Assembly (NCBI RefSeq): GCF_003918875.1
Contig: NW_025764940.1
Location: forward strand, 186,001-250,000
Origin: Haliotis rubra
Taxonomy: Eukaryota
Direction: 5' to 3'
DNA: 64,000 nt
In this document: in pieces, positions 6,633-46,595 of the stretch
Numbering within the stretch: position 1 is the first letter of the stretch
Layout: every line of letters begins with the position of its first letter
The notes under the pieces: generated by a model
Told to the model about the DNA's origin: nothing
Seen by the model: the letters and a program-made list of their open reading frames with translations, nothing else
The model's database searches: none
Translations under genes and position numbers: made by a program

Positions 6633-9094
6633 ATGCGATGGAAGAAAGTCGTTGTGGGCGTTGTGCTCATCCTCAACATAGCTGTGGGAATCGCAGTTAT
6701 TGGTGTTGTGGTGACAATCCAGCAGGAAGGTTATCCCTCTGCCACTCTTCGGAGCACTGCAGATAATTTGAAGAAACACCTCGAAGAAGTACGAATTAAA
6801 AAAAATATATATTGATTAAAATTCTATTAGAGAGAATTATAACCTTTTTATTCAGTCGTAAATGAAATATTGTCGGCTGCATTGAAAGTTTGCTGCAAAC
6901 AGAAGACCTGGACTAAAAACTAGTCTCTGAAATGAACATATTTTACAGACAAAAACACTTCATAATGAAAAATATAATGACAGGGAGCCCTGAGACCATA
7001 CTCTAGACTTGCATGGGCTTTCTTGGATATAGTAAAACTTGTTTCAGGGTCTGTATGACAGACTATCAGAAGACATTACATTAATGATTTGGTTCAATAT
7101 TAATATATTAACTCTAAGTTTCTATTTTTCGTTGTTGTTTGTTCAAAACGAAAGTAAATATAATAAAAGTGATCGTGTGTTATCACTGAGAACTGATGTA
7201 TCTATGAGGCTGAAAATGTATGAAAACAAATGTCGTTTAATCTACAAATGGAACAGCATGTCAATGATAACATAATGATTATTTCAGACTTATGCAGATC
7301 TTCGACAGACCCTGCTTCAACAACCTCCCAGTAAGTGGGTCTATTTTGCCCTAAGCTCGGTTCCTGTGAATGTTAAAGCCATCGCTTACAAAAATGAAAC
7401 ATGCATTATCAAATCTTATTTTCTCATTTATCAACAGAGTTTATCAATATAAACTTTTCATACAAGGTACATGGTATAGTTTTTTGTAGACAAGTGTAAA
7501 GGAATGTGATATTATGAATGTTTCTATTGATACAGGTCCACAACCGATCGCGACACAAGAACACTGGAATATCCTGAAACCTATCGCATTCTTTACGGGA
7601 CTTGAATTTGATATTAACAAGGAAGGTATGTATCTCTCATGTTGTCGACATATTGTTTTCAGGTTAACATCGTTACGTTGCCGGGGAGATGTCTGTCCAG
7701 CATGCTACCATTCAGCAACTATGAGCATCGAGAAATCATTTGTAATCTTGTAAATATGCTCTATTTATATGCCTAACTAGAGCTTTCAAAACATACTGGT
7801 GACATGTTATGGTTGAAATATTATTTCCAAACTTGACTTAACAGTCACAAAAACTGTGTCCAATTCAGTTTCCCCTTTTCGACATTTAGTATTTACACGT
7901 GTTAATAATTGCCTGTATTTCGCCTTGTGTCATCGGTTTGGAAGAACGCGCTCGCGTATTGGCAACACCTGATGCGATCACTATTTGATCTGTTTGTAGT
8001 TTAAATTGCTTGGGATTGTGTACAATGTTCTTGTCACTTCTTATGCAGTAAAGCAAACTTTTAACCAAGGTATCGGGGACCGAAGGAATCGGATTGTTGA
8101 CGTCAAAGGACAAGTGCTTCATCCATGCTTTTCCATGGGTCAACAGTCTGATTAAGTTATTTCTTCTAAATAGAGTTACCATAACTATAAACAGAGGTTT
8201 TGTTTGTTTTTTTATGTGCTCGTACCACACACACAATTCAAATCCTGTCTCACATGTATTGATATTATACGACCGACTCCGTGGTGTACTGGTCAGAGCG
8301 TCCCCCCGGAGAGCGGAAGTTCTCGGGTTCGATCCGGCCGCGTCATACCAAATGACGTTAGAATATGGTACTTGTTGGTCTCTGTCTGGCGCTCGGCATT
8401 AATGGGTACAACAAGGACTGGTAGGCTAGGAGTCAGTATAATGTGTCTGAGTGGGGTATTACTGCAGTATGGTATCTCAGTGAACTAGCACTATAAAACC
8501 AGCTTAATTCTGGGCTAGTACAAGCAGCCACACAGACGCATGCACGTCGTCATATGAGCGAAACAATCTAAAGTACGACGCTAAACCCCATTTCACCTCA
8601 CATGATATTATACATCCTTGGTCACCGCACTTAATCTGTAATACTGACACACTTGTGCCTTCTTAACAGATATGCCTTCATCCACTGCAGTCAGGAACTG
8701 GGTGCCTTTCGTTGCACCAGGAGGCCGGCAGTACTTGTACAATGGTATGAAGTATGAAAACGGGAGTATTGTGGTCCCGGCCGCTGGAATATATGCTATA
8801 TATGCCCATATGAAATTCTACACAGAATACAATCATCGCTCAGATCCCGAGTTAGATTTCCATCACAGCATAATAAGATACAATGCCGCAAATCAACAGC
8901 TGGAAACAGTATCGAGGAACATAGTGACCGAGAACAAGAACGATATCATTGATGGATCAAGTCTGGAATACTCCAGTGATATCCACGTGTTGGTGCAACT
9001 GAACGCTGGTGATCAGTTAATTGTAAATGTGTCGCATTCGGAACAGTTAAAGCCTGACAGGGATTGGCATTATTTCGGAGCTTATATTATTTAA
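6633..9094 (+). CDS. TNF-superfamily ligand paralog 2; type II membrane protein, about 237 aa; exons 6633-6788, 7288-7330, 7536-7625, 8670-9094
   Basis: GT-AG introns with phases 0,1,1 join into one open frame. It contains a TM segment VVVGVVLILNIAVGIAVIGVVVTI, a stalk, strand A LKPIAFFTG, then VRNW...NGMKYENGSIVVPAAGIYAIYAHMKF...LNAGDQLIV...HYFGAYII, which are typical TNF homology domain motifs. Confidence 0.9.
8271..8602 (+). mobile_element. tRNA-derived SINE with a Meta-domain-like core, in intron 3 of TNF paralog 2
   Basis: A and B boxes (TGGTGTACTGG, GGTTCGATCC); core GTCATACCAAA...ATGGTACT...CTGGCGCTCGGCATTAA; TSD TGATATTATAC at 8260-8270 / 8603-8613. The Meta assignment is from memory of the core motif. 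Confidence 0.75.
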
Positions 9095-11084: not shown

Positions 11085-13558
11085 CAAACCGAAACATGAG
11101 TCTCATTAACCAATACAGACAATGACCTACTTTTCAGCCGATCCTAATTTTCTCGTGTGCAATTGAAAAGAAACTCTACAATCAACTATGAATTCGAATT
11201 ATTTGCTTCATAAGAAAATGGGATTTACAAGTTAATCTTAATGTTAGAGTTTAATAAAATCGTATTTCTACATTTTATGTCGAGGTTTAGTTAGCATGTC
11301 ATTAACTAAGACGTCGCAGACTGCCCATGTTTGAAGAGGTCGTATATAATTCACAATTCATCTGTCACACTGGTTACACCTGTTTGTGCTATTTTGCGCT
11401 TATTAAATGCATTTTTGTAACATTACGAAAAACATTGAGTACACATCAGTCTCGTTTCTTGCTGACTGGGTTCCGTCCTATTGCGCAACTTAGTACAAAA
11501 ACCAGTTCAGAATTCATTCAACTTGATATATAGATATTAATCAGTATTATTTGATAAGTGTAATCACTTGTATATTGCAACACTACGCTCCTTCTAACCC
11601 TTGCAAACACGTCGTGGTCGTGCAGCGTTCTCTGTCGTACAGCGTGCTCTGACAAACGGAAAACTGGAAATCGAGAGAATCTCAGATCGAGGCTCGGCCG
11701 TTAGACAAGTTTGGCGGTCTGGTGCGGTCTTGATATTATATCAGTCACATTGTACGTTACAAAAATACACTTAATAAAGGCAAAAAAAACACTATAACAG
11801 TTGTAACGAGTAAGCCAGATGAATAGTGAATCATTGTGCTACCTCTTGTAACAGGGGCAATCTGTTACGTCTTACACCCCCATTCCACTGACCATCGGAA
11901 CCTCATCTGAAGCCGATCTGATCCCAATTATGTTACAATTTTGGCATTCCGATGAGTTCAGATGAAAATTGACTCGATATCCTTTTTGGGTGGACCCCTT
12001 TTCCGCAAAATCAGATACAGATCCAACATTGATCGGATTAATCGGATGAAAGACTGGTAGAGGCCCGATGTCTGTCCGACATATTCATTGGCGGCGTCCG
12101 ACTGATCCAATTGCGGTCGGATTGTAAACCGAGGGTGACCTGACACTAATCTGACACTTCAAATACTCTCCCCACACCAATCCGACAAATCGGTTACTAT
12201 TCGTTAGGTAATCCGACACTGACCAAATGCTGGTCGGATTTGTCGCCACAATCGGCAGTCGAGCGTAAACACGGGCTGCACCTCCTGACGGTACTAGTCA
12301 TGGATCAACTCCCTCGCAACGCTGCAGCCCTGGGCTTTGTTTTATGCTGCAGCAACAAACTATGCAACAAGATGCAATGACCCTTGAGGTCTTGAGAAGG
12401 AATAGAAGACCACGTCGCTGTTGGGTTCGACCATGACTGCAAGCTGATAGAAGGATAATATACGGGCACTACATCAGACTAATGAATGAACTGAGAATGG
12501 AGGATACAACGACATTCTTCAATTTCTTGAGAGTTAGGCCAGTATTGTTTGATGTACTACTCCAGAGCCTCGCACCAAGACTCGCGAAGGCTGATACCAA
12601 TACTCTTGAGAGCTCTTGAATCTGGTCTGAAGTTAACCTGCACCCTAAGGCACCTTGCAGTCGCTTCTTTGCCTTCTCTCCCCGAACATTTCAGTTCTTT
12701 CTTGGATCCATCTTCAGGATCTTGGTGTTCGATGAAAATCTGCTGAGTGAGTGTCGGCTGACCCTCCTTTGTAGTCCGTTGACCGTCAGATGTCACCGCT
12801 TGCTATGCTATGTCGGATGGCAGTTGAGTTAATGAGCGCTTATCCTCCGACGTCACAACGGGTTGCAATCAGTCGGTGCTAAATCACCCTCCGATGAGTT
12901 GAATTGGTGATGGGCGGCTATCATTCGCGTTCGGCAGACTGCAGATGGCAATCAGATGAGCGTCAGATGACTGTTAATCATCGGACACTTATCCGATTGC
13001 CGTCAGACGTCGGCTTGACACGTCCGATAGTTGCACAACACGAATCTGACACATATCGGACTGACTCGACATTCATCCGACATTGACTCGATTTTTTGCA
13101 ACCGGAAATAGCGTCCGATGGCGAACTAAGCTCTGAGCTGAGTTCCTTCATTGGACGATTTTGCCTCGTCGGATCACGCCCGACACGTCGGACACTCACC
13201 TGATAGTCGACAAACACAAATCGGATTCATCGGACTGTGGTACGATACTCTTCCGTGGGTTACCGGATGGAAAAATCTTTGCTTCCGATGAATGACTGAT
13301 GAGCCAGAAATCTCTGTGGAATGGGGGTGTTAGTTAACGAACGACATACTGACTAAACCTCGACATAAGAAATAGACATACGATTTCATTAAACTTTAAG
13401 ATTAATTTGTAAATGCCATTTTCGTATGGAACAAGGAATTGGAATTCAGTGTAACCATAGTTGCTTGCAGTGTCTCTTTTCACTTTCACTCGAGAAAAAT
13501 CGGATGGGCTGAAAAGGTCATTGTCTGAATTGGTTAATGAGACTCTTGTTTCGGTTTG
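11085..13558. mobile_element. Foldback/MITE with about 225-bp inverted arms, hosting the Harbinger element
   Basis: 11085-11315 is the reverse complement of 11867-11874 plus 13330-13558 (CAAACCGAAAC...GTTTCGGTTTG). Confidence 0.75.
11875..13329 (+). mobile_element. PIF/Harbinger DNA transposon, internally deleted
   Basis: TIR CACCCCCATTCCAC / GTGGAATGGGGGTG with TTA TSD on both sides. Decayed transposase N-terminus at about 12390-12660 (RRPRRCWVRP*L...YGHYIRLMNELRMEDTTTFFNFLRV...FDVLL...LESGLKLTCTLRHLA). Confidence 0.9.
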
Positions 13559-13751
13559 ATGATTTAATTAACCAAGGCGACTTCATGTAACCATAACAAC
13601 CGACAGCAGGTAAATAATGCTGACCAAATGGAACGCCTATATATGATAAGCATGTTCCTGGAAGTTTCAAACGCTTTCGATATGAATTAGCTTAACGGAC
13701 TCATAGAAAAACCCTAAAATGGCGTAGTTATATCTAATTTCTCTTCATTGG

Positions 13752-13908
13752 AGTAAGTGAGATTAATTTTACACTGCTTGTAGCAATATGATAGCAAGAC
13801 GGCGGGCGACACCAGAAATGGGCGTCACCCATTGTGTCATGTTTGGAATCGAACCCGGGTCTTCGGCGTAACGAGCGAACGCTTTAACCACTTGGCTACC
13901 CACCACCT
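13752..13908 (-). mobile_element. SINE-A copy
   Basis: Matches the SINE-A consensus. Further degenerate or partial copies at about 18088-18220(-), 23470-23558(+), 40192-40280(+, TSD TCCACAACACTC), 41085-41170(+) and 41365-41532(+). Confidence 0.8.
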
Positions 13909-14569: not shown

Positions 14570-15560
14570 TAGATCAGCCACACGCACACAGCAAGGCACC
14601 GCACTCATATCCCTACAGGCATTAGCCGGCGAGACTCCAACTGCATACTCCATGAACAGCTGACAATAATATTCTGGGCATACTCCCATATAACCCATGA
14701 ATCATAAACGAGTCATTTTATACACTAAAACAAACCCGAAACAAGCAGTTCATCCATTCCGTCCCCCAATAAACCACTGCATACTTGACTACCTAACAAA
14801 ATACTAATAACCTAAAACAAAACTACCAGCCATGAAACATCTTCAAACCTAAACTACAACAACAAAAAACAACAACAAACAACCAAACAAAAAACAAAAA
14901 CAACAACCCAAAAACAAACAAAAAACAACCAAATAAGAACAAATAACCCAAACACCACTAAAGCAATAACTCTAGGATACGAGTATTGACCTAATTAGTG
15001 CGACACAACGGGTCCTCTAGCCGGGGTTCATAACGCACTGGCTTCAACAGAAACATAGCACAACCTAATCACCAAACAACAAAATAAAATTATGATACTA
15101 CCTTACTAAATACCACCTTACCCTTTCAAAGCAAAACTGAATAAACGAACAAAGTTAATAAATCACACATAATCTATTTTTTTAGACAAACACATCCAGT
15201 TCCTTTGGATTTTTCCCCACGCCAAAGTGTTTGGTAAAAATCACGCCGACCTAATAGCCAAAGTGACCCTCAACCTATGACAAATAAACGTAAATGCACC
15301 CTAAAATAATTACTAAAATTCTAATCCTGATCTGCAATACCCACTCATGTATTACATTGCAGTACTACATACACCAAAATAATATTACCTCGGAGATCAC
15401 TCTCAAGAAACACTTCACTATATTTGCAATCACCCCTGATGCTTTTAAACAATACTTTTAAATCCATAAGGCATCTTATAATTTGAAACTGTCCTTCTCC
15501 ACCGGACATAATTACACCCAAAATAGCACTAACGTTCTAAAAGCCTACATACCCCTTCCA
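14570..15560 (-). other. Strongly strand-skewed segment; possible decayed mitochondrial insertion (nad5 3' part / nad6-like)
   Basis: The + strand is very G-poor and C/A-rich. The minus strand in invertebrate mitochondrial code gives broken hydrophobic frames with LKVLFKSISGDCKYSEVFLESD, ISSAWFLPN...KKMDYVWF and W...FVLVY...MGYMGVCP. Confidence 0.3.
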
Positions 15561-16344
15561 TCTTGAACGCACTGCTTATCATAACGGTGTTCATTAGCAC
15601 GTCATTTTGGGTTTTGTTGTCCATATATTTTTCTCTCTAAATGTTTAGTCGTATACATGTTATGCTTTGGTATCAGTGTGGACAGACAAACTCATCTACT
15701 TTAGTTTTTTGTAACTGCTTTTATCAAACACTATGTAGACATTTCTAATGTATTTCTAGCCATTTAAGCCATTATAGGATATTGTACATATCTTTTCATC
15801 ACGTGTTTTATTTGGTATTTAGATCTGCACTATTGGTTCAGTAGTGTGCTAAAGATAAGATTAAAGATAGATTAAAAAGAGGTACTAATAACGATGACAG
15901 CAAGAGCTGAGTTGACACACGCAGAAACATGTTAACTAAACCCATCCTAAAAACATTGGACTAAGGACCCCCTAGTATCACATTGTGTAATCTTGTAAGA
16001 TCTCAAGAAATATGTTATTCAAAGACTAATATGTATTAGCTAAAAATCATAAACGACTTTAGAAAAATATATATTATTCCGAAGACATGAATTTTATAAC
16101 AAATAGTGAATGCTTTATCCCAGAACATATATAAGAAACAAGAACCAACAATGCTTGAATTGATGTGTTACTTACTCGTACATCACGTGCTGGGGTCAGT
16201 TTATAGAGAAAAGTGAACATTTTGCTATCGATTGGAAATAAACCAAAAGTTCTTTCCATGCTTTGAAAGAAATGGAATACAGTAATGAACGATTTTGTTG
16301 ATACTGATGGAAACTTAAGCAATATGTACTATAAACAACAAGTA

Positions 16345-17243
16345 TGGGAACACCCTCAAATTTGATAGTCATATATACACTTAAACGTGGTGAGGTCACT
16401 TATGCTCTAAGGTAAATGCAACTTTTTGTGTGCTTAATGGACACTTTAAACGACATGTTGGAACATGCAGTGAAGCAACTGATTCAACATTCGTTGAGTT
16501 TGAGTGAAATGAAACACTGAAACGACAAGGGTGCTGAAACACACCAGCACCATGTTTGATTCAAACACAACAGCTTAGTGCATGTGGAAAACTTCCCATG
16601 CAGCCTATGGCAACTGGACACTGGCAGTTGTGAATCGGTTCCGAAGGGCTTGGGCCTCCTTGATGCTGACCTTTTTGTATGTTTTGGTCTTCCAGAGCGA
16701 CGGCTGTTCTGTACTCTGCCAGTGGCCTGAAACCTGTCCCCCAGTCTGTGAATGACAGTCTGAGACACCTGTAGATGGAGAGCCACACTTCTTATGGATT
16801 CACCATCCTGTACCCATGCAATGACCCTGCTTCTGTTGTGGGCGCTTAACGGTCTGTTCCGTGGCATGGTGAAGAAGTTGTTAGGGGCTTCGATACTGTC
16901 AGTAGCTTCTTTTAAAGGAAACGTTGCCACAAGCTGCATGGGAAGTCTGTCTTCCACATGCACTAGGCAGTTGTCTTTGGTCGTTTGAATCAAACATGGT
17001 GCTGGTGTGTTTCAGCATCCTTGTTGGTTCAGTGTTTCATTTGGGCGTTTGAATCAAACATGGTGCTGGTGACATTGTTTTTAACAATGTTACATTTCAA
17101 TCAAACTCAACGAATACTGAGTCAGTTGCTTCACTGCATGGTCCAACATGTTGTTCAAAGTACCCATTAAGCACACAAAAAGTCGCATTTACCTTAGAGT
17201 ATAAATGACCTCACCACGTTTATCAAATTTGAGTTTGTCCCCA
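16345..17243 (-). mobile_element. Tc1/mariner deletion derivative with long (about 270-bp) inverted repeats
   Basis: Arms at about 16345-16615 and 16922-17243. The internal reading frame MPRNRPLSAHNRSRVIAWVQDGESIRSVALHLQVSQTVIHRLGDRFQATGRVQNSRRSGRPK (ATG 16867) is a Tc1 paired-like HTH plus GRPR motif. Confidence 0.88.
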
Positions 17244-18386
17244 TCCTTTAAAAGTGTTTGTTTGGAGTATGATTGCAAAACTAATTTTCGGGAAAAAGCA
17301 GGCATTATAAGACACATTGTAAACTTCAGTCAATATAGAAGGGAAAAGAATTATTCTTTATGTGCCAAATTGTATGTAAATGTTTACCTGTGTGTTGTCG
17401 TATACAGATCAAACTCGACATACACAATTGTAAATTGTGAATATATGAAATATGACGATAAAAAATGACAATGTATTGTCTTGTCCGTTCTCCTTCAATT
17501 TGTATCAGCTGTATGTACATGTAATGTGTACACTTCCACGCAATGCTTCGTCGTTACAGCTATGCAATTCCGCCTCATTGGTTGATTTGTTCTCTCATGT
17601 GCTCTCCTTCTCTCTCATGTTTTCAGGACAACATCCTTACGTCACCGGGCAGATACTTTTCCAACATGATACCATTCAGCAACTATAAGCATCGAGGAAT
17701 CACTTGAAAATAGTTGGTTGTTGTTAAACGCCGCACTCAGCAATATGTCAGCTATATTGCGGCTGTCTGTAAATAATCGAGTCTGGCCCAGACAATCCAG
17801 TGATTAACAGCAAGAGCACCCATCTACGCAAAGGGAAATGATGACATGTGTCAACCATGTCAGCGTGCCTGACTATCCGATCCTAATAGTCGCCTCTCAT
17901 GACAAGCATGGGTTGCTGAAGATCAATTTGCAACCCGGATCTTAACGGGTCGTCTCATATACGTAAAACACAGACCTACTAATCCTTTTAACCGGTTCTA
18001 CAATGTGCGCATAGAGCCCCTTGATATGAAAGAAAATGGCTTAGGAATATCTGAGTTAAAGAGATTTTAGATTTGGATACAGGATAAGTGAGTGAGTAGT
18101 GTTTTACACTCACGGCATGTAGCAAAAGAAATAGTTTTCACACATTCTCCCCATGTTGGGATTCGAACCAAGTCTTCGTCGTGACGAGCAAGGACTTTAG
18201 CCACTTGGCTACCCAACCGACTGCTATACAGGATGAAGGAATGATGAACGCGTATTTGAAATTGACACTTATAAAAACTGCAGCATCTCTATGTTTTCAG
18301 GGATATGATAAACCTTTAACGAAAAACCCTGGCTGCTGAACCTTTTGCCAACAACAGTTACTGTGCAAAACCGTACTTTCTCATTG

Positions 18387-18685
18387 GAGTTGAGTTGAGT
18401 TGAGTTGGGCTTTACGTCACATATGCATTATTCCAGCATTATAGTGACGAGAATAAGTCTGCGTTAATAAACATTGTAAGTACAGAGTCAAAATGAGTTT
18501 TATTTGAAAAAACTTATATTCATTACATTGTCTTTTAATGACAGAAAAAGGCATATCACTAAATTGAAAAGCAGGCAATTTGTTAGTCACATTACACAGT
18601 TACAATTTATGATACAGATCAACTTCCCTCAGGTAGTTCACTATCAGATGAGCGCTCACGCGGGAGAACAGATCTTTCAGATTTG
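18387..18685 (-). mobile_element. LINE 3' fragment, same subfamily as 38340-38920
   Basis: The reverse complement matches 38650-38920 (AAAGATCTGTTCTCCCGCGTGAGCGCTCATCTGATAGTGAA...), with a (GAGTT)n tail. Confidence 0.8.
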
Positions 18686-19842
18686 TTGCATCATAGTGTG
18701 AGTCGTGTAGGCAAAATAACATAACACAATATGAGAGTTAGAGGCAAACAGGTATATGGAAGATTGAGAGTAACCTAGAGCTGGCTGTGTGGTTTTGGTT
18801 AAAATTTAACGCCGCACTCAGCAATATTCCACCTATATGGGGGCGATGTATCGAGTCCGGACCAGACAATCCAGTGAACTACATCATCAACATCAATCTA
18901 CCCAATTGAGACTCGAACATGTGTCAACCCACTCCGCGAGCTTGACCGCCCGATCCCTTTAGTCGCCTCTTGTGACAAGTATGGGCCACTGAAGATCAAT
19001 TGTAACCTGGATCATCATGGGTAGGAGCTGTGTGAAGTATTCCGTGAAGTAACACATACGTTAGGCAAGGAACAATGGGTGATTTTTACACATTAGAAAC
19101 GCAAGGAATAATAAAAGGCATGAATACGTCCACCATTTCATTTAAAATAAAACAATAATTGTCCTCTAATCGTAATATTTGCACGTCCATATGTTACCAA
19201 GGAATGTGGGCTTTGGGTACTGATGGATGCCGAATCATGTTTACATTGGAGTAAATATGCGCAAGAGCTACTGTCCAGTTCAACATTCAGATGCCGGTAC
19301 ACAGATCTCATCCTCATCCAGCCAAACCAGTTTCGCGCCTACTTCCCGTCAAACGCGATCAGAAGTCAGAGACGATCCAAGGGAAACAACTCTTGTGCTT
19401 TTACAAGAAATATATCCCCTGCTCGAGAAAAGCGATTCATTCTCCCTCGCTGCAACATTGGGCCCAAACATCCGGTTCAGTCCAAAGGGTTATATTAGAG
19501 TACGCTGCTGCATCAGGCAAATATGAGACTATCTAAGCATATGTCGTCCAATTAGAAACATTAATCCAAATATATTGAAGCGCAATAGGGTATCATTATA
19601 TTATTCTAAAACGTACCGATCATTACGTCATTCTGCACGTAACTGTCGAATCGAATGTCCATCATACTTCCGGTAGAGTCCTAGGTTAGATTATGACTTT
19701 AGGAAGCGATTGTACATCTTTAAACTATTTCTCAAGTATATAGAGATTACTTTCATTACCTTACTGTCAGAATACGATATGTGCGTAAGCCCTATAGTTG
19801 TTAGAATCGTCAAACAGCGTAGGGATGACAGGTTGTTTTATG

Positions 19843-25127: not shown

Positions 25128-25284
25128 NNNNNNNNNNNNNNNNNNNNNNNNNNNNNNNNNNNNNNNNNNNNNNNNNNNNNNNNNNNNNNNNNNNNNNNNN
25201 NNNNNNNNNNNNNNNNNNNNNNNNNNNNNNNNNNNNNNNNNNNNNNNNNNNNNNNNNNNNNNNNNNNNNNNNNNNNNNNNNNNN
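25128..25284. other. Assembly gap (N run)
   Basis: Run of Ns. Confidence 0.99.
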
Positions 25285-32441: not shown

Positions 32442-34654
32442 ATGGATTGCATCGAAGGACATAAAGCGTTAAGAACGAAACAGCTTCAGCTGGCTGGCTG
32501 TGCTTCACTTCTGCTGTTGAACATAGCAGTGGGTATTACGGTTATATGCCGGGTGGTGTCCAACAACCAAGACACACAGGTTACGAACAACAGATTGATG
32601 CAAGAAATAAACAGGGTAAGAAGAAACCTTCAGCATGATTTGGAAACTCCAGAATATGTTACCAAGAATGTTAGGCGTATTTTTTTCTGTAAACCTGTTT
32701 TTAGCATTCATTTAATTGTTGGATATTTTCGACACCATACCGTGATCCACTCATTTTTTAAATATTTAAAGAATACCCTGTCTTGACAGCCCTCAGAAAC
32801 AAATTTATTTTGGTGTAAGGCGATAAATAGATGTGAAAATTCCATCAATGGATCAATGAATATCGGTAATAACACCGGGTGTCGTGACCAGCCCTACCGG
32901 TAAAGTATAAGTGAGTGAGTTTAGTTTTACGCCGCACTCATCAATATTCCAGCTATATGGCGGCGGTCTGTAGATAATCCATAGGATTTCTATACATAGT
33001 TTTGCTGCAAGCATCAATGATTTAATGTTCATTCAGTGTTGCAGATTTATGTTTGCATGCCATGATTCATTCAGTTTGTAAATATAAAACGCTTGTGCCA
33101 AAGAATACCTAGTCTTAAATATCCTCACATAAAGATTTCTGTTTGGTGTAAAGAGATAACTAGGTGTAAAACGTCCATGAATGAATTACTTACTACAGGT
33201 ATTCAAGAATAGGTTAAGCATGTCAGACCCTACAGCTAAACTAAGGCACCAGTTTGATCATTTTACAGATATACGATGAGCAACTGGAGAAAATGAATGA
33301 TGATGATAATGGTGATTCCAAACGTAAAGGTGAGCAGATTAAATCATAACAATTCTTATTTTCTAATCGGATATATCCAACACATTCACCTGCCCAGTTT
33401 GTATTGGAAATAAACATGTTAAAGGTTTTCTACCGTCGCAAAAGCTGATAGAAATAATGAGTTCAAAGACGAGTGAGTGAGTCTGGTTTTATGCCGCTTT
33501 TAGAAATGTTCCATCAATATCAAGGCGGGGGACACCAGAAAAGGGCTTCACACGTTGTATCCATGTGAATCGGTCCCTGACCTTCGGCGTGACGAGCGAG
33601 CTCTTTAACCACTGGGCTACCCCACCGCCCCGTTCAAAGACGGAGCTGTGTTGTTGACTGATATGTTATGATGACTGTCCTACAATTGCCTCTGCCTGTG
33701 TATTGACAGCTATGTTTATACATATTACAGGTGGAAGGAAACCGACCATGTCGCCAGCCTTCTTGAACCTCCTGAAACCTATAGCATACTTTACTGGACT
33801 GGACTTCGATCGATACATTGGTAAGACATTCATTTCATCCTACCTATCCACATACGTTCGATCTGCAGTACTTATATGACATTTATAATGACATAAGTGG
33901 CGTGAAGATCCGGATCAGAATTGGTCTTCAGAAGTCCACGCTTATCTCAAGAGGCGATTAACGGGATCGGGTGGCCACGCTCGCTGACCTGGTTGAGGCA
34001 CCTGGGCATCCCAGCTGCTTAGATCAATGCTCACTTGACTGTCTGGTCCAGACTCGATTACTTTCAGACCGCCGCCGTGTAGCTGCAATATTGCTGAGTG
34101 CGGCTTCAACAACAAACAAAAACTCAAATATAGCGAACGGTAAGTTTTCAGGGTGTGTGTTTATCTCACTGCAATTAAGGAATTACAAGCAATAACTCCA
34201 CCAATTCTATGAACAATTTATCATTCCAGAGAATCAACATGACACAGCCATAAGAAACTGGGTACCCTTCGTCGGACCTGGAGGGCGACAACTGAAGTAC
34301 AATGGAATGCAGTATGAGCATGGCAGCATCATAGTTCCCGCCACGGGTGTGTATGCTGTGTACAGCCATGTTAAATTTTACACAGAAAAAAATCGTCGGG
34401 GAGACACCGAAATTGAGTTTCACCATTCCATAATGAGGTACAATGCATTAAAACAGACGAGTAAACCTGCACTTGCTGACACAATGTCTGAGAATAAGAA
34501 CGACGTCATTGACGGAGGCTCTCTGGAATACTCCAGTAACATCCATGGACTCCTGCAGCTCAATGCTGGGGATCAGCTGCTTGTTAAAGTATCACATCTG
34601 AAACCTCTACAGCACGACCGGGACTGGCATTACTTTGGAGCATACATGATTTAA
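32442..34654 (+). CDS. TNF-superfamily ligand paralog 3; about 249 aa; exons 32442-32615, 33269-33329, 33731-33820, 34230-34654
   Basis: GT-AG introns with phases 0,1,1. Exon 3 (90 nt) and exon 4 (425 nt) are identical in length to those of paralog 2. TM LAGCASLLLLNIAVGITVI; LKPIAYFTG; IRNWVPF...GSIIVPATGVYAVYSHVKF...LNAGDQLLV...HYFGAYMI. Confidence 0.9.
33472..33631 (-). mobile_element. SINE-A in intron 2 of TNF paralog 3
   Basis: Same consensus; TSD GTTCAAAGACG at 33461-33471 / 33632-33642. Confidence 0.9.
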
Positions 34655-38920: not shown

Positions 38921-39445
38921 TTACTATGTTATATGTGTTTTAACAGTGAATAGCACTAGTTTTGTATGTTTACACGAATGCGTGTATGTTTCGATGTGCT
39001 TGTGCTACTATGTACTACTATTTACTATGGGTATGTTCAGTTCGTCATGTGTGACATTGCATCTAATGCTAAAACCCTATAGAAACATGTAATATTAAAA
39101 ACAATTAAATCGGCGAAGAGAACGTATATGTTTATTTGTGTATTACTGACCACATGTTAAGGAAAACTTCAATACGATTCCTGACAGATCATTGCATTAG
39201 AAAGGACGATTAGCAAGAATTTAAGATTTAGGATCAAATGAAACTCCATGACATCAATGTTGAGAAGATTTAATATTTGTCTCATACTTTATGTCATCAT
39301 ATCAATTGAACATCTGTTCTGTTGATGTACAGTTTTCATTATCGCAAATCACCTAACATTTAAGTCCATAATCACTTTGTCGGTCTCTGGACATGAGGAG
39401 AATTTGTTCACATGATTAAGGATATGTTTCCTTAAGGATATGCAC

Positions 39446-39736
39446 CTACTCGTCGGGGTCTCCCGACAGCTTTGGGTACACACCATACAAGAAGATTAAT
39501 CTTGTCCCGAAAGCTGCTGCTAAAGTTCCCAGGATCATATTCTTTCCAATGGAACCTCCGCCTGTAGTGACTGCAATTGCGATAACGATAAAATCAGCGG
39601 CAAATCCAATACCAGCACTCTTCGCCCGATCCTTCGCCATGTCTTCATTTTCATCTTGAAGGTAAACAGTAGCAGAGCGCAGGTCATAGCATGGGCCTAC
39701 AATCGGGATGTGCTTGAACAGTTCATGGAAGGTCAT
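39446..39736 (-). CDS. Small (96 aa) uncharacterised Gly/Ala-rich protein with two hydrophobic segments; single coding exon
   Basis: The ORF MTFHELFKHIPIVGPCY...SAGIGFAADFIVIAIAVTTGGGSIGKNMILGTLAAAFGTRLIFLYGVY is preceded 13 nt upstream by a good acceptor (ttttctgtttcag, exon starts 39749). A candidate non-coding exon ends at CAG|GTATTG (40838), with TATATAAA at 40914-40921 and AATAAA at 39131-39136, all on the minus strand. Confidence 0.65.
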   Translation of the reverse strand: MTFHELFKHIPIVGPCYDLRSATVYLQDENEDMAKDRAKSAGIGFAADFIVIAIAVTTGGGSIGKNMILGTLAAAFGTRLIFLYGVYPKLSGDPDE

Positions 39737-41533
39737 TTCCCTACTGTCACTGAAACAGAAAATATTTCATCACACTATTGCAAAAGGACGTATTTTTGCT
39801 CGCCATTTATTAATATCACTTGAGTCGTATGCTGATGAACGAGCAGGATCCGGTCTTTTTACAAACTGCACCTCGTAAAGACATTAGCTTGTAGATGTCT
39901 TGAACAGATGAGGTTTGCAAGACATTTACAGTTTTGTAAAGGTGGTACTGCGATCGACTTATATTATATGAACAACAGGCTATATATTTATTACCAATAT
40001 GTAGACGCTTTACCCCATGTCATACAGGTTGTGGTGCAGTACTGTTAACCAAATTGTATGTTAACAGAACAAGCAGATGCCTCACATCACCCTGACTTGT
40101 ATTCCATGCACATTACCGCTAAGATGCGGCAAATGTTGATCGTAATCATTTTTAATCAGATATGATAATGGTATGAATCTCCACAACACTCGTGTGAAGC
40201 CCATTTCTGGTGTCCCCAGCCGTGATGTTGCTGGAATATTGCTAAAAGCGGCGTAAAACCAAACTCAGTCAGTCAGTCAGTCCACAACACTCATCCGCAT
40301 TTGGACGTATGAGCTGTAGATAACATTCTTGAAAGGCATTTAGAAGTTGGACGATCATGAATACACACACTTTACCGTACAAATGAAATGATAAACAAAT
40401 AGTCCTGGCATTATGCAATATAATACATGAACACTTTTGACCTCACCCCTTTGCGAATAAAGTCTCGATCATGTCTGTTCAAAGAATAGGTTGACGAATA
40501 ACGGAATGTTCCTCTCAAGCGCCTTCTTATGGCTGGGGGCTGGGGGTGCTGGTGGGGTTGGGTCACCGTTAAGGGGGTCGTCAGTTTTGTTCTGGGGAGG
40601 TAGGGGGTCATCAATTCGTACATGACAGGCGGGAGTTCACTAACTTTGTACATAATTTTCAGGGGGTGTCATTCGCAGTTTACATGCTTCTCCTTAAATA
40701 TCACCCACCTCCTCCCAGCCATAAATTATTAACTGTCCCTCATATAACAATTGTGTTGTAAGAGCAGCAACGCAATGCAGCTAACGTTTGAAGCCAGCAC
40801 GACAATGCTATAAAACATCTATTATACATAACAATACCTGCAAACCCCGTTCCACAGCCACGGGTAACCTCTGTCATGTGCTGAGACGATTGTACAATTG
40901 CGAGTACAATGTGTTTATATAAAAGAGTTGATACCAGGTGTTCGAGAAAAGGTGAATTAATTCTGTCCTAACCTCTAGCATTCTGTCAAAAAATACATGC
41001 AAAGATTAGTCACTTGTACAACTGAATCGGGAGGATATGGCACAATTCTAAACGGCGAACTGCATGGGGCATATTTTTTTGGGTACAAAGTATGAAGAAC
41101 ATTCTGCTGTCCTCCGCCGTGATATTGCTGGAATATTGCTAAAAGCGGTGTAAACCTATACTCACTCATTCACTAGATACGTTCATGCTACACCTTATAG
41201 GTTGGTTAAGTGTCATGACAGAACAAGAATATGAAGCACTACTTTTATTAAAATCAGATACACACCAACAAATAAAATATCTGTATTCCATTCGTCGTTA
41301 TTTACGGTTGAATTACTTGAGATATCCCTGAAACACAATGCTGAGGTGATATTCATAACACACATAGTGGTTAAGCGTTCGCTCGGATCCGCAAGATCCG
41401 GGTTCGATACCCCACATGGGTACATTGTGTGAAGCCCATTTCTGGTATCCCTCGCCGTAATACTGCTGGAATGTTGCTAAAACGGCTTTAAACTAAACTA
41501 AGTAACTAAGTAACTCACTCACTCACTCACTCA

Positions 41534-43878
41534 CCGTATGTCAATACCCGTTACCTACCTTGTTATCGTCTCCGTTACCCACAGTGCATCATCCCGTTAC
41601 CCACCCTTTATCACCTCCGTTACCCACCGCGTATCGTCTCCGTTACCCACCCTGTATCATCTCCGTTACCCATCCTGTATCATCTCCGTTACCCACCCCG
41701 TATTGTCTCCGTTACCCACCCGTATCTTCTCTGTTACCCACCTTGTTATCGTCTCCGTTACCCACAGTGCATCATCCCCGTTACCCACCCTATATCACCT
41801 CCGTTACCCACCGCGTATCGTCTCCGTTACCCACCCTGTTTCATCTCCGTTACCCACTCTGTATCGTCTCCGTTACCCACCCCGTATCGTCACCGTTACC
41901 CACCGCGTATCATCTCCGCTACCCACCCTGTATCATCTCCGTTACCCACCGCGAATCATCTCCGTTACCCACCATGTATCATCTCTGTTACCCACCCTGT
42001 ATCATCTCTGTTACCCACCCTGTATCATCTCCGTTACCCACCCTGTATCATCTCCGTTACCCACCATGTATCACCTCTGTTACCCACCCTGTATCATCAC
42101 CGTTACCCACCGCGTATCATCTCCGCTACCCACCCTGTATTGTCTCTGTTACCCACCGCGTATCATCTCCGCTACCCACCATGTATCATCTCTGTTACCC
42201 ACCCTGTATCATCTCTGTTACCCATCCTGTATCATCTCCGTTACCCACCGCGTATCATCTCCGCTACCCACCCTGTATCATCTCTGTTACCCACCGCGTA
42301 TCATCTCCGTTACCCACCCTGTATCATCTCCGTTACCCAACCTGTATCATCTCTGTTACCCACCCTGTATCATCTCCGCTACCCACCCTGTATCATCTCT
42401 GTTACCCACCGCGTATCATCTCCGCTACCCACCCTGTATCGTCTCCGTTACCCACCATGTATCATCTCTGTTACCCACCCTGTATCATCTCTGTTACCCA
42501 TCCTGTATCATCTCCGTTACCCACCCTGTATCATCTCCGTTACCCACCCTGTATCGTCTCCGTTACCCACCCTGTATCATCTCCCTTACCCACCCTGTAT
42601 CATCTCCGTTACCCACCCTGTATCATCTCCGTTACCCATCCTGTATCATCTCCGTTACCCATCCTGTATCATCTCCGTTACCCATCCTGTATCGTCTCCG
42701 TTACCCACCCTGTATTGTCTCCGTAACCCACCGTATATCATGTCCGTTACCCACTTTGTTATCGTCTCCGTTATCCACAGTGCATCATCCCCGTTACCCA
42801 CCCTGTGTCGTCTCCGTTACCCATCCTGTATCGTCTCCGTTACCCACCGCGTATCATCTCCGTTACCGACCCTGTATCGTCTCCGTTACCCACCGTATAT
42901 CATGTCCGTTACCCACTTTGTCATCGTCTCCGTTACCCACAGTGTATCATCTCCGTTACCAGCCCTGTATCATCTCCGTTACCCACAGTGGATCATCCCC
43001 GTTACCCACCCCTTATCACCTCCGTTACCCACCGCGTATCGTCTCCGTTATCCACCCTGTATCGTCTCCGTTACCCACCCTGTATTGTCTCCGTTACCCA
43101 CCGTATATCATGTCCGTTACCCACCATGTATCGTCTCCGTTATCCACAGTGCATCATCCCCATTACCCATCCTGTATCGTCTCCGTTACCCATCCTGTAT
43201 CGTCTCCGTTACCCACCGCGTATCGTCTCCGTTACCGACCCTGTATCGTCTCCGTTACCCACCGTATATCATGTCCGTTACCCACTTTGTCATCGTCTCC
43301 GTTACCCACAGTGTATCATCTCCGTTACCCACCCCTTATCACCTCCGTTACCCACCGCGTATCGTCTCCGTTATCCACCCTGTATCGTCTCCGTTACCCA
43401 CCCTGTATTGTCTCCGTTACCCACCGTATATCATGTCCGTTACCCACCGCGTATCGTCTCCGTTATCCACCCTGTATCGTCTCCGTTACCCACCCTGTAT
43501 TGTCTCCGTTACCCACCGTATATCATGTCCGTTACCCACCATGTATCGTCTCCGTTATCCACAGTGCATCATCCCCATTACCCATCCTGTATCGTCTCCG
43601 TTACCCATCCTTTATCGTCTCCGTTACCCACCCTGTATCATCTCTGTTACCCACCGCGTATCGTCTCCGTTACCCATCCTGTATCATCTCCGTTACCCAT
43701 CCTGTATCGTCTCCGTTACCCACCCTGTATTGTCTCCGTTACCCACCGTATATCATGTCCGTTACCCACCATGTATCGTCTCCGTTATCCACAGTGCATC
43801 ATCCCCATTACCCATCCTGTATCGTCTCCGTTACCCACCGCGTATCGTCTCCGTTACCCACCGTATGTCAATGTCCGT
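41534..43878. repeat. 23-bp minisatellite (CTCCGTTACCCACCCTGTATCAT), about 100 copies
   Basis: Direct reading; the translated ORFs have a 23-aa period equal to three units; followed by (GA)n at 43880-43922. Confidence 0.97.
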
Positions 43879-44831: not shown

Positions 44832-46595
44832 ATGGGTTGTGTACGAGGACGGACGGTATTGATTACAGTAACTGTTTCCATGGTTATTGCGAACATTGTC
44901 GTCTTCGGCGTGGCTGTGTATTTGGCGTCAACGAGCCAGACGGATCGACAGCCCGCTGCTGAAGCCCAGAGATTCAAAGATTACATAGACAGCAAGGTGT
45001 GTGGATCGTGTTTACTTAATAGTGTACTTGAAACATTTATAGGTTTAATCTGGCATATATGTGTTCGTACCGACCACTGAAATAGAGGTTATACCCTTAC
45101 GTGTAACTAGGAGTTCGTTATTATTGCATCGTCAATGTTATTGAACTGAACATTCGTAAGCTTATGATGAACTATAGAGTAACGACGGGTCCTAATGTTA
45201 CGAACGCTTTGAGGATCGGGACCCTTTAACTCTTTGCTTGAGTGTAGGAATGTAGTTCATATTTGACCCAATGATCAGATTTACCCTTTTCTGCTACAAG
45301 ATATGCTGCTTTCATTAAAGTCAACCTAAATGATAAACCGTAATTCTGTTAACATTTTCATGACTTGAGATAATTATATCTGCAGATAGCCGATGCAGTG
45401 AAACTGGCAGAGAAATCATTCAAGGACAACAGTTCTGAAATTAAAGGTATGATGAACATTATCAACACAATCACAAAGAAAATGTCACGTGAGACGCAGG
45501 TATACATGGGATTTAAAATGAAAAATCAGGTATTTGAAAGAAATAGGTAGCTGCATATACTCGATTCCACAGATGACAATTTCAATTTGCTTTGTAGATG
45601 CACTGGATTTGACTTTTCTGAACCTCTTGAAACCCATGGCTTTCCTTCATGGAGTGGGTCCCTTTGACGAGTCAGGTATGTATGTGAGGCATGTGTAGCT
45701 GCTAAAACATGTATAACCTATGTGTACATGTAGATGCATAGACAGCTGGTTTGTCATATTTCAAAGTTAGTGATAATTTGTAAAATACGATTAGGGATAT
45801 TCAAATTGCCATGTGTCCAGCGTAATCATCCGTGAAGATCTGGGTTAGAGTTGATCTTTAGCAACCCATGCTTGTCATAAGAGATGACTAACGGGATCGG
45901 GTGGTCAGGTTGGTTGACACATGTCATCGCACCCCAATGTGGTATATCGATGCTCATGCTGTTGACCACCGGATTGTCTGGTCCATTATTTACAGACCGG
46001 GGTAATATAGCTGGAATATTGCTGTGTGTGGCGTTAAACAACAACCAATCAATCAATCCAGCAATTATAACAACATCTGTTCATGGACAGTTGTATGTAT
46101 AGTCAAAATAGATAAACTATAACTTATAAATGTCTTACCCACTCCGGTATATAGTTCTATAAACCTGTCAATATCACTTCAGACATTCAAGGTGGAAGAA
46201 CTACAGTTCGAAATTGGATAACAACAGATGGTCTGAAGAAGGCCGAGCTTCTTAATGGGATGAAGTACGCCCGTGGCAGAGTCATAGTCCCTGAGAGCGG
46301 CTGTTACCGGGTAACTGTTAGTGCAATGATGCACTATGAGGGTACAAGGGGACATTGTAAAACCTTCTCACTTGACGTCATCCGATATAACGCAAACACA
46401 AAGAAAGAAGAAGTCATATATCGTGAGAATGAAGAGATGTGTCCTGAAACCAAGGACGGGGCTTCTGACTACCACAGTCATTTCGTCGGTCTTGTAGAGT
46501 TAAATCCTGGAGATCAGATATTTGTCGTTGTATCAGATCTGTCACTTCTAAAGACACACAGAGACGACCATTACTTTCAAGTTTGTTTAACTTAA
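44832..46595 (+). CDS. TNF-superfamily ligand paralog 4 (divergent); about 238 aa; exons 44832-44996, 45386-45446, 45598-45675, 46183-46595
   Basis: GT-AG introns with phases 0,1,1; exon 2 is 61 nt as in paralog 3. TM VLITVTVSMVIANIVVFGVAVYL; LKPMAFLHG; VRNW...NGMKYARGRVIVPESGCYRV...LNPGDQIFV...HYFQV. AATAAA at about 47012. Confidence 0.88.

Follow-up and report, generated by a model that had tools for sequence, protein, structure and literature searches.

In a 64,000-nucleotide window of the Haliotis rubra genome (assembly GCF_003918875.1, contig NW_025764940.1, positions 186,001 to 250,000; positions below are those of the window), a small gene is read from the minus strand within a cluster of tumor necrosis factor (TNF) genes, between TNF paralogs 3 and 4. 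We consider it probable that this is a genuine but young, weakly constrained and lineage-restricted protein-coding gene. The original prediction, made from the sequence alone, put it forward as the best candidate for an undescribed component. The gene is in fact already annotated in RefSeq, though nameless: LOC124275014 has three isoforms of 109-110 amino acids and is listed only as an "uncharacterized protein".

The evidence for the gene begins with its terminal exon, the features of which are given in Table 1. The predicted open reading frame (ORF) of 96 codons and a stop codon is present in the 64-kb sequence, with the letters of the protein exactly as first quoted, and the last 96 residues of the three RefSeq isoforms are 100% identical to the ORF product. 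All three isoforms join the exon at the predicted acceptor, and the frame is open for four codons (DSRE) further upstream, up to that acceptor. The predicted AATAAA signal was also found. The GC content was 0.478 in the ORF, compared with 0.327 in the 3ʹ untranslated region (UTR) and 0.388 in the intron. The length of the ORF alone is within chance, as several chance ORFs of similar size occur in 64 kb; its coincidence with a spliced exon, together with its conservation in Haliotis asinina described below, exceeds chance. Because the exon was single-copy in the H. rubra genome in both DNA-level and protein-level searches, we rejected its identification as a transposon fragment.

Transcription of the exon was observed in three sequencing runs, X1, X3 and X5, which are small, come from two studies and behave like transcriptomes (RNA-like runs); a fourth, large run, X6, is DNA-like. 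Each RNA-like run gave one contig covering the exon, from 39131, 39120 and 39116, respectively, to exactly 39750, and each had zero depth in the intron stretch 39788-40183, which the DNA-like run covers as well. Because the RNA-like contigs cover the exon and stop at the acceptor, they confirm the terminal exon, both at its splice acceptor and at its polyadenylation site. The exon contigs of X1 and X3 run on past the acceptor by 63 and 49 letters; the second piece and its joint are not among the matches listed. The complete transcription unit that had been predicted is therefore real in its terminal exon (acceptor, ORF and AATAAA), whereas its TATA box and first exon found no support, as described below.

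The comparison with other abalones covered loci that were fetched via their TNF proteins (locus numbers with L below). In H. asinina, an intact homolog of the ORF was found by tblastn (E 2e-22 to 2e-24) 7-10 kb upstream of the ortholog of TNF paralog 4, at L007:2-295 and L008:3022-3318. Its identity with the H. rubra ORF is 49-52% in amino acids and 70% in nucleotides. The acceptor lies at the same position and in the same phase (tatttcag/G, L008:3020/3021), and the frame ends at the same ...DE stop, followed by AATAAA signals. The H. asinina record calls no gene there. Thus, an intact ortholog linked to TNF genes does exist in a related genome. H. asinina has two copies, one on a chromosome and one on an unplaced scaffold, which differ at six non-synonymous and no synonymous sites.

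The two species share the position of the gene within the TNF cluster but differ in its orientation: the ORF is on the TNF strand in H. asinina and on the strand opposite to the TNF genes in H. rubra. The H. asinina loci with the ortholog of TNF paralog 3 (L005, L006) run collinear with the window as far as 39027, where the match ends, and window 38947-39750 is collinear, in inverted orientation, with L007:3524-13. A segment at the edge of this rearrangement matches H. asinina twice, once in each orientation. The antisense arrangement, head-to-head with paralog 4, that had been predicted is therefore true of H. rubra but, of the two species, belongs to H. rubra only. This lack of conservation argues against a conserved shared promoter.

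In a nucleotide-only alignment of the ORFs of the two species, all four gaps were multiples of three (3, 3, 3 and 6), compared with 10 of 49 gaps in six non-coding alignments from the same loci; (10/49)^4 is ~0.002. The probability of 100 codons staying stop-free after 30% neutral substitution is 0.12. Among the orthologs 47 residues are invariant, and these are concentrated in IPIxGPCxDLxSAxxYLxD...DMAKDxA..AGIG and around GGxIG. Judging from these sequence comparisons, the small gene is probably protein-coding, and we conclude that selection acts on the frame but not on most residues, as is seen in many small proteins of recent origin.

Several observations weigh against this reading. The ratio of non-synonymous to synonymous substitution rates (dN/dS) between H. 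rubra and H. asinina was 0.64-0.69, close to neutral, and the changes showed no codon-position bias (26/29/34 over the three positions). Because the H. asinina exon has no in-frame ATG ahead of "DMAKD", the start codon in that species must lie in an upstream exon; when 3 kb upstream was compared with the window by tblastx, the result was blank and no H. asinina 5ʹ exon was found. In addition, the only assembled transcripts seen, those of X1, X3 and X5, carry a frameshift form of the ORF. Their exon contigs differ from the window at 13-14 positions, including a deletion at 39674 that is part of a complex variant. When this variant was applied to the reference, the N-terminal motif was followed by 42 out-of-frame residues and a stop, and by computation the hydrophobic part could be produced only from the internal Met of "MAKD". 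The deletion is derived, because the reference state at 39669-39674 is shared with H. asinina. It may segregate as an allele in H. rubra or be the state found in a sister species or close relative, and in either case the ORF is not uniformly preserved.

The DNA-like run X6 holds both the deletion form and the intact form, in one of two contigs each. In the second haplotype of X6, on a contig spanning 39614-39756 (the N-terminal part), only synonymous changes were among the listed differences (39644, 39698 and 39722). In the H. rubra-labelled runs, the other listed differences in the ORF were five synonymous and five non-synonymous, in addition to the frameshift. The weak constraint (dN/dS ~0.65) and the expressed frameshift allele together argue against an indispensable role.

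At the 5ʹ end of the gene, the prediction was either wrong or lacked support. The three RefSeq isoforms differ only in their 9-10 N-terminal residues, which, when placed in the window as peptides, mapped to three separate upstream places on the minus strand, each followed by a GT donor. The first coding piece of isoform X3 falls in a minisatellite between the small gene and TNF paralog 4; every unit of this minisatellite carries a GT donor on the minus strand, and both the coding piece and its donor are drawn from one repeat unit. The predicted TATA box (40914-40921) and non-coding exon ending at 40838 lie in bins (40778-40975) where the RNA-like runs had zero contig depth and thus gave them no support, and the 5ʹ coding pieces of RefSeq lie elsewhere. 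The DNA-like run is also empty in 40778-40876, and the hole at the proposed first exon therefore proves little. RNA-like contigs were found inside 40382-40777, a stretch that had been taken for intron. Because this depth fits an exon of the RefSeq X2 type better than an intron, the 5ʹ end of the gene is evidently heterogeneous.

These results also bear on another explanation, in which the exon is a decaying remnant: as the last exon of an older gene, it would have lost its promoter and 5ʹ exon when the segment was inverted in the lineage of H. rubra, and it would now be read from cryptic 5ʹ exons, minisatellite units among them, while drifting toward a pseudogene. It is consistent with the orientation to the TNF genes, opposite to that in H. 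asinina, with the flanking segment that matches in both orientations, and with three unrelated alternative 5ʹ pieces, one of them in a minisatellite. The lack of a 5ʹ exon conserved between the species in tblastx, the derived frameshift allele in all RNA-like runs and the absence of the H. rubra start ATG from H. asinina point the same way. However, the reference and the second X6 haplotype are intact, the latter with the synonymous differences given above, and an in-frame ATG gained by H. rubra, with A at -3, makes the ORF self-contained. The direction of the inversion is also not readable, as the outgroup is without the exon. We regard the remnant explanation as unlikely.

The distribution of the gene is narrow. 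When the 96-amino acid protein was searched against 1.84 billion representatives, with a word-indexed search and exhaustively with phmmer, only the protein itself was returned. As a control, a TNF exon of the same window matched annotated orthologs in H. asinina, Haliotis cracherodii and Haliotis rufescens in the same database. The proteomes of the three congeners are therefore in the database, and they are without an annotated homolog of the small protein. In H. cracherodii, the interval from a paralog-3-like gene to the ortholog of paralog 4 (L011:11363-18574), which is fully covered, showed no trace of the ORF; nor did ~89 kb of the H. cracherodii TNF cluster or 21 kb in H. rufescens. Around the paralog-3-like TNF genes of H. 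rufescens (L003) and H. cracherodii (L004, L009, L010 and L012), the flanking sequence contained no ortholog. Thus, the ORF is kept in H. asinina but absent from the syntenic interval of H. cracherodii, and the gene is so far restricted to the H. rubra/H. asinina branch of abalones.

Searches of family and structure databases gave no relatives. Pfam, NCBIfam and PHROGs had no usable match for the small protein, a profile search of PDB was blank, and exact-product look-ups with the RefSeq isoform and with the 96-amino acid ORF returned nothing on record. Contigs from viruses, metagenomes and bacteria were scanned with the ortholog alignment or the N-terminal module, and these scans gave no relative either. 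A sub-threshold match to Hemolysin_N (E 0.016), obtained with the H. rubra sequence only, was rejected as chance. The flanking genes are true TNF-domain genes, as predicted, with PF00229 matches at 34307-34654 and 46260-46595 (E 1e-10 to 1e-15), whereas the small protein had no Pfam match to this domain.

A profile of the three orthologs was used in a six-frame search of the H. rubra genome and matched the N-termini of intronless ORFs of 304-318 amino acids on other contigs (E 0.017 and 0.028). These ORFs, called the 304-aa family below, are multi-copy and clustered: three contigs carry at least four intact copies and many degraded ones. BLASTP aligned the N-termini of the small protein and the family over 49 residues without gaps, at 33% identity (36.6 bits), and hhalign of the small-protein alignment against the family gave 79.6% probability and E 1.5e-5. 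The likeness runs without gaps from the very N-terminus: IP[VI][VA]G, then C/Q-x-G/E-D/N-x-D-[LM]-A-K-[DE], then A..G[LF]..D[VF]. These alignments give moderate support, though not proof, for an N-terminal module of ~50 residues common to the small protein and the 304-aa family.

Past residue ~55 the two proteins showed no similarity by blastn or tblastx in any frame. The same comparisons gave no support for the idea that the C-terminal half of the small protein is a frameshifted copy of a 304-aa gene. Where the small protein has a hydrophobic hairpin, the 304-aa family has a Lys/Ala-rich linker and a C-terminal domain of ~170 amino acids (YMYDYYGNN...YVDEYAKQYW), which is absent from the small protein. 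The 304-aa ORFs are also unspliced, whereas the small gene is spliced. The family, including its C-terminal ~170 amino acids, had no match in Pfam, NCBIfam, PHROGs or PDB sequences.

A further explanation is that the locus is non-coding and gives a spliced and polyadenylated long non-coding RNA from the TNF intergenic region in which the ORF is fortuitous. Near-neutral dN/dS without an excess at third positions, the lack of homologs in protein databases, the tolerated frameshift allele and the missing gene in the H. asinina annotation would fit such an RNA. On the other hand, the frame is open in two species at ~30% nucleotide divergence, with indels in frame and the same stop and acceptor phase, the N-terminal module resembles an independent ORF family, and GC content is higher within the ORF. 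A non-coding locus is thus very improbable.

The small protein has no signal peptide. Its conserved N-terminal module of ~50 residues is predicted to be helical and is followed by a predicted Gly/Ala/Ile-rich helix, a GGxIG turn, a second hydrophobic helix and an acidic C-terminus. The two small-residue-rich hydrophobic segments that had been noted are therefore present, as predicted helices. In H. rubra their Kyte-Doolittle peaks over 19 residues were 1.84 and 1.63, above the usual threshold, and each predicted helix keeps one charged residue (D52 and R83). AlphaFold2 models were all-helical, with helices at 35-62 and 66-94. From these predictions, the C-terminal hairpin is probably membrane-associated. 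This assignment is tempered by three points. The second helix of H. asinina reached only 1.31-1.41, under the usual transmembrane threshold. The second hydrophobic segment contains R, K and D, so that membrane insertion is not secure. The confidence of the models was low, with a predicted local distance difference test (pLDDT) score of 48.8 from the single sequence and 48.2 with a three-sequence alignment.

The resemblance to glycine-zipper proteins, which was central to the original prediction, did not hold. When the H. rubra protein and both H. asinina proteins were searched with hmmscan against Pfam-A at E<=10, no Gly-zipper model matched. A repeated (G/A/S)xxxGxxxG register on a helix was not conserved among the orthologs: only AGIG and GGxIG are invariant, G73 and G80 of H. 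rubra are not conserved, and the single conserved GxxxG is the GGxIG at the turn. The small protein is like glycine-zipper membrane proteins (Gly-zipper_Omp PF13488 and others) in its size, in its Gly/Ala/Ser-rich hydrophobic helices and in having one GxxxG, and an Atlas cluster with PF13488 scored 0.88 for the H. asinina ortholog. It is unlike them in lacking a match to the hidden Markov models (HMMs) and a conserved repeated GxxxG, and in having D52 and R83 inside the helices. Feature searches of the Atlas led from the H. rubra protein to an unnamed fungal cluster, and from the H. asinina protein to unnamed Bacillota, colicin-like and Gly-zipper clusters, of which the small colicin-like and Gly-zipper ones scored 0.88-0.90 and are leads only. 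The orthologs point to different clusters, and no family was assigned from them. The proposal that the protein is an immune effector of the glycine-zipper kind, active on membranes or oligomerising, and regulated together with the neighboring TNF cytokines can draw on the position inside the TNF cluster in two species, the small-residue-rich helices and the Atlas leads, but it is highly unlikely in view of the missing HMM match and conserved GxxxGxxxG, the missing signal peptide, the unconserved orientation towards the TNF genes, the discordant Atlas clusters and the expression of a null allele.

The N-terminal module was also compared with PT-TG, the pre-toxin domain of bacterial polymorphic toxins (PF14449), the domain architectures of which have been surveyed (PMC13483458). 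The first 20 residues of the 304-aa family, DWLDFIPVVGTVKNTVEAVT, match positions 8-26 of the PF14449 profile (E 0.014, 15.8 bits), under the cut-off of 23.5 bits, and true PT-TG domains of bacteria resemble the family within this stretch. An hhalign probability of 95% between the 304-aa family and PT-TG was discounted as circular, because the pattern used to choose the bacterial examples came from the abalone family itself. The small protein itself had no match to PF14449 at all and only 1.4% hhalign probability against four true PT-TG domains, and a six-frame search of the genome with PF14449 at E<=1 found no match anywhere. The Atlas gave a PT-TG cluster at 0.81 for the small protein, as a lead only.

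The small protein and PT-TG both have a short helical module with an IPxxG turn close to its start, and in both a Gly-rich hydrophobic stretch comes next. Unlike PT-TG, the small protein has no TG...TGE motif after the IPxxG turn, where the ortholog alignment has YLxD(E/G)(N/D)xDMAKD, and no toxin domain C-terminal to the module, where there is a hydrophobic hairpin of ~45 residues and then the stop; the match of the 304-aa family is sub-threshold. Neither PT-TG nor glycine-zipper membership was assigned to the small protein. It is rather doubtful, though conceivable, that the module of the small protein and the 304-aa family descends from bacterial PT-TG, an animal lineage having acquired and diversified a polymorphic-toxin cassette, one offshoot of which was fused to a membrane hairpin in the TNF cluster as a fast-evolving conflict or immunity protein.

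For a young protein-coding gene, which is the reading we favor, the outline is as follows. Nearly all of a protein of ~100 amino acids is encoded by one conserved terminal exon, which transcripts reach from several alternative, non-conserved 5ʹ exons. Translation would start from a short upstream ATG or, as an alternative in H. rubra, from the ATG within the exon. The N-terminal module, apparently common to the lineage-specific 304-aa family, would be cytosolic, while the C-terminal hairpin would anchor the protein to, or associate it with, a membrane. The gene would be dispensable or in flux, because its orientation has changed, its residues evolve near-neutrally and a frameshift allele is common and expressed. 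Such a gene resembles taxonomically restricted (orphan) small genes, which are short, have few exons and variable 5ʹ ends, have homologs only in a narrow clade, and show dN/dS near 1 and polymorphism for presence and for null alleles. It differs from them in that part of the small protein can be traced to another lineage-specific family, and it would thus not be purely de novo.

Table 1. Coordinates of the features of the small gene and its surroundings (window positions, unless a locus number is given).
Feature	Position	Strand	Remarks
Terminal exon	39116..39749	-	13 nt ahead of ATG, ORF and 3ʹ UTR of ~315-330 nt; contigs of runs X1, X3 and X5
96-codon ORF and stop	39446..39736	-	100% identical to residues 14-109 of XP_046566445.1
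Splice acceptor AG, phase 2	39750..39751	-	exon begins at 39749; RNA-like contig ends and three RefSeq isoforms
AATAAA polyadenylation signal	39131..39136	-	contig ends 0-15 nt downstream
Complex variant (39669 G>A, 39671 A>G, 1-nt deletion at 39674)	39669..39674	-	frame shifted after residue ~24
Segment at rearrangement edge	38923..39039		matches H. asinina twice: L006:15541-15651 (+/+) and L007:3434-3524 (+/-)
5ʹ coding piece, isoform X1 (MTWGKASTYC)	39995..40023	-	donor GT 39994-39993
5ʹ coding piece, isoform X2 (MIETLFAKG)	40447..40472	-	donor GT 40446-40445; RNA-like contig depth in 40382-40579
5ʹ coding piece, isoform X3 (MVGNGDDTG)	42044..42067, or identical second candidate 42435-42458	-	within the minisatellite
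Predicted TATA box and first exon	40838..40921	-	unsupported; no coding use in RefSeq isoforms
Minisatellite, 23-bp unit x 100	41548..43862		between the small gene and TNF paralog 4
Intronless 304-318-amino acid ORFs	L017:1501-2412(+), L018:1501-2415(+), L019:1498-2451(-), L020:1501-2352(+)		other contigs of the same genome

Other features of the neighborhood were also noted. The minisatellite has a strong GC skew and contains spurious ORFs of up to 809 amino acids, and H. asinina has related arrays at the corresponding site (L007:759-3408 and 7400-7814). A short interspersed repeat, with copies at 40192-40282, 41080-41174, 41365-41516, 33471-33631 and elsewhere, had very high contig depth in all runs; it recurs at 84-93% identity in loci of H. 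asinina, H. rufescens and H. cracherodii. The ORF at 44832-45080(+) has a type-II membrane anchor and is likely the first coding exon of TNF paralog 4 (RefSeq LOC124274966). The H. asinina ortholog of this paralog is named TNF ligand superfamily member 6-like, with 68% identity in the last exon, and the H. cracherodii ortholog is at L011:18574-20261. A 169-amino acid ORF at 16484-16993(-) with sub-threshold HTH_29/HTH_38 matches, of the type of a transposase N-terminus, is probably a transposon remnant within the TNF cluster, and 25128-25284 is a run of N (assembly gap or masked). In H. rufescens, a gene call of 1278 amino acids without a Pfam family lies downstream of a TNF gene (L003:13558-19451); it overlaps minisatellites with units of 33-38 bp (12599-13872 and 15217-18964) and is probably a translated repeat.

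The locus documents a gene in flux, in which one coding exon is conserved while start codon and 5ʹ exons turn over, splice donors are supplied by a minisatellite, the segment is inverted between species, and an expressed null allele segregates. It is therefore useful for studying the rise and loss of small lineage-restricted proteins, and it cautions against inferring function from location among clustered immune genes. An origin of the module from bacterial pre-toxin domains, or a response of the gene to infection, would make it an abalone-specific player beside the expanded TNF ligands.

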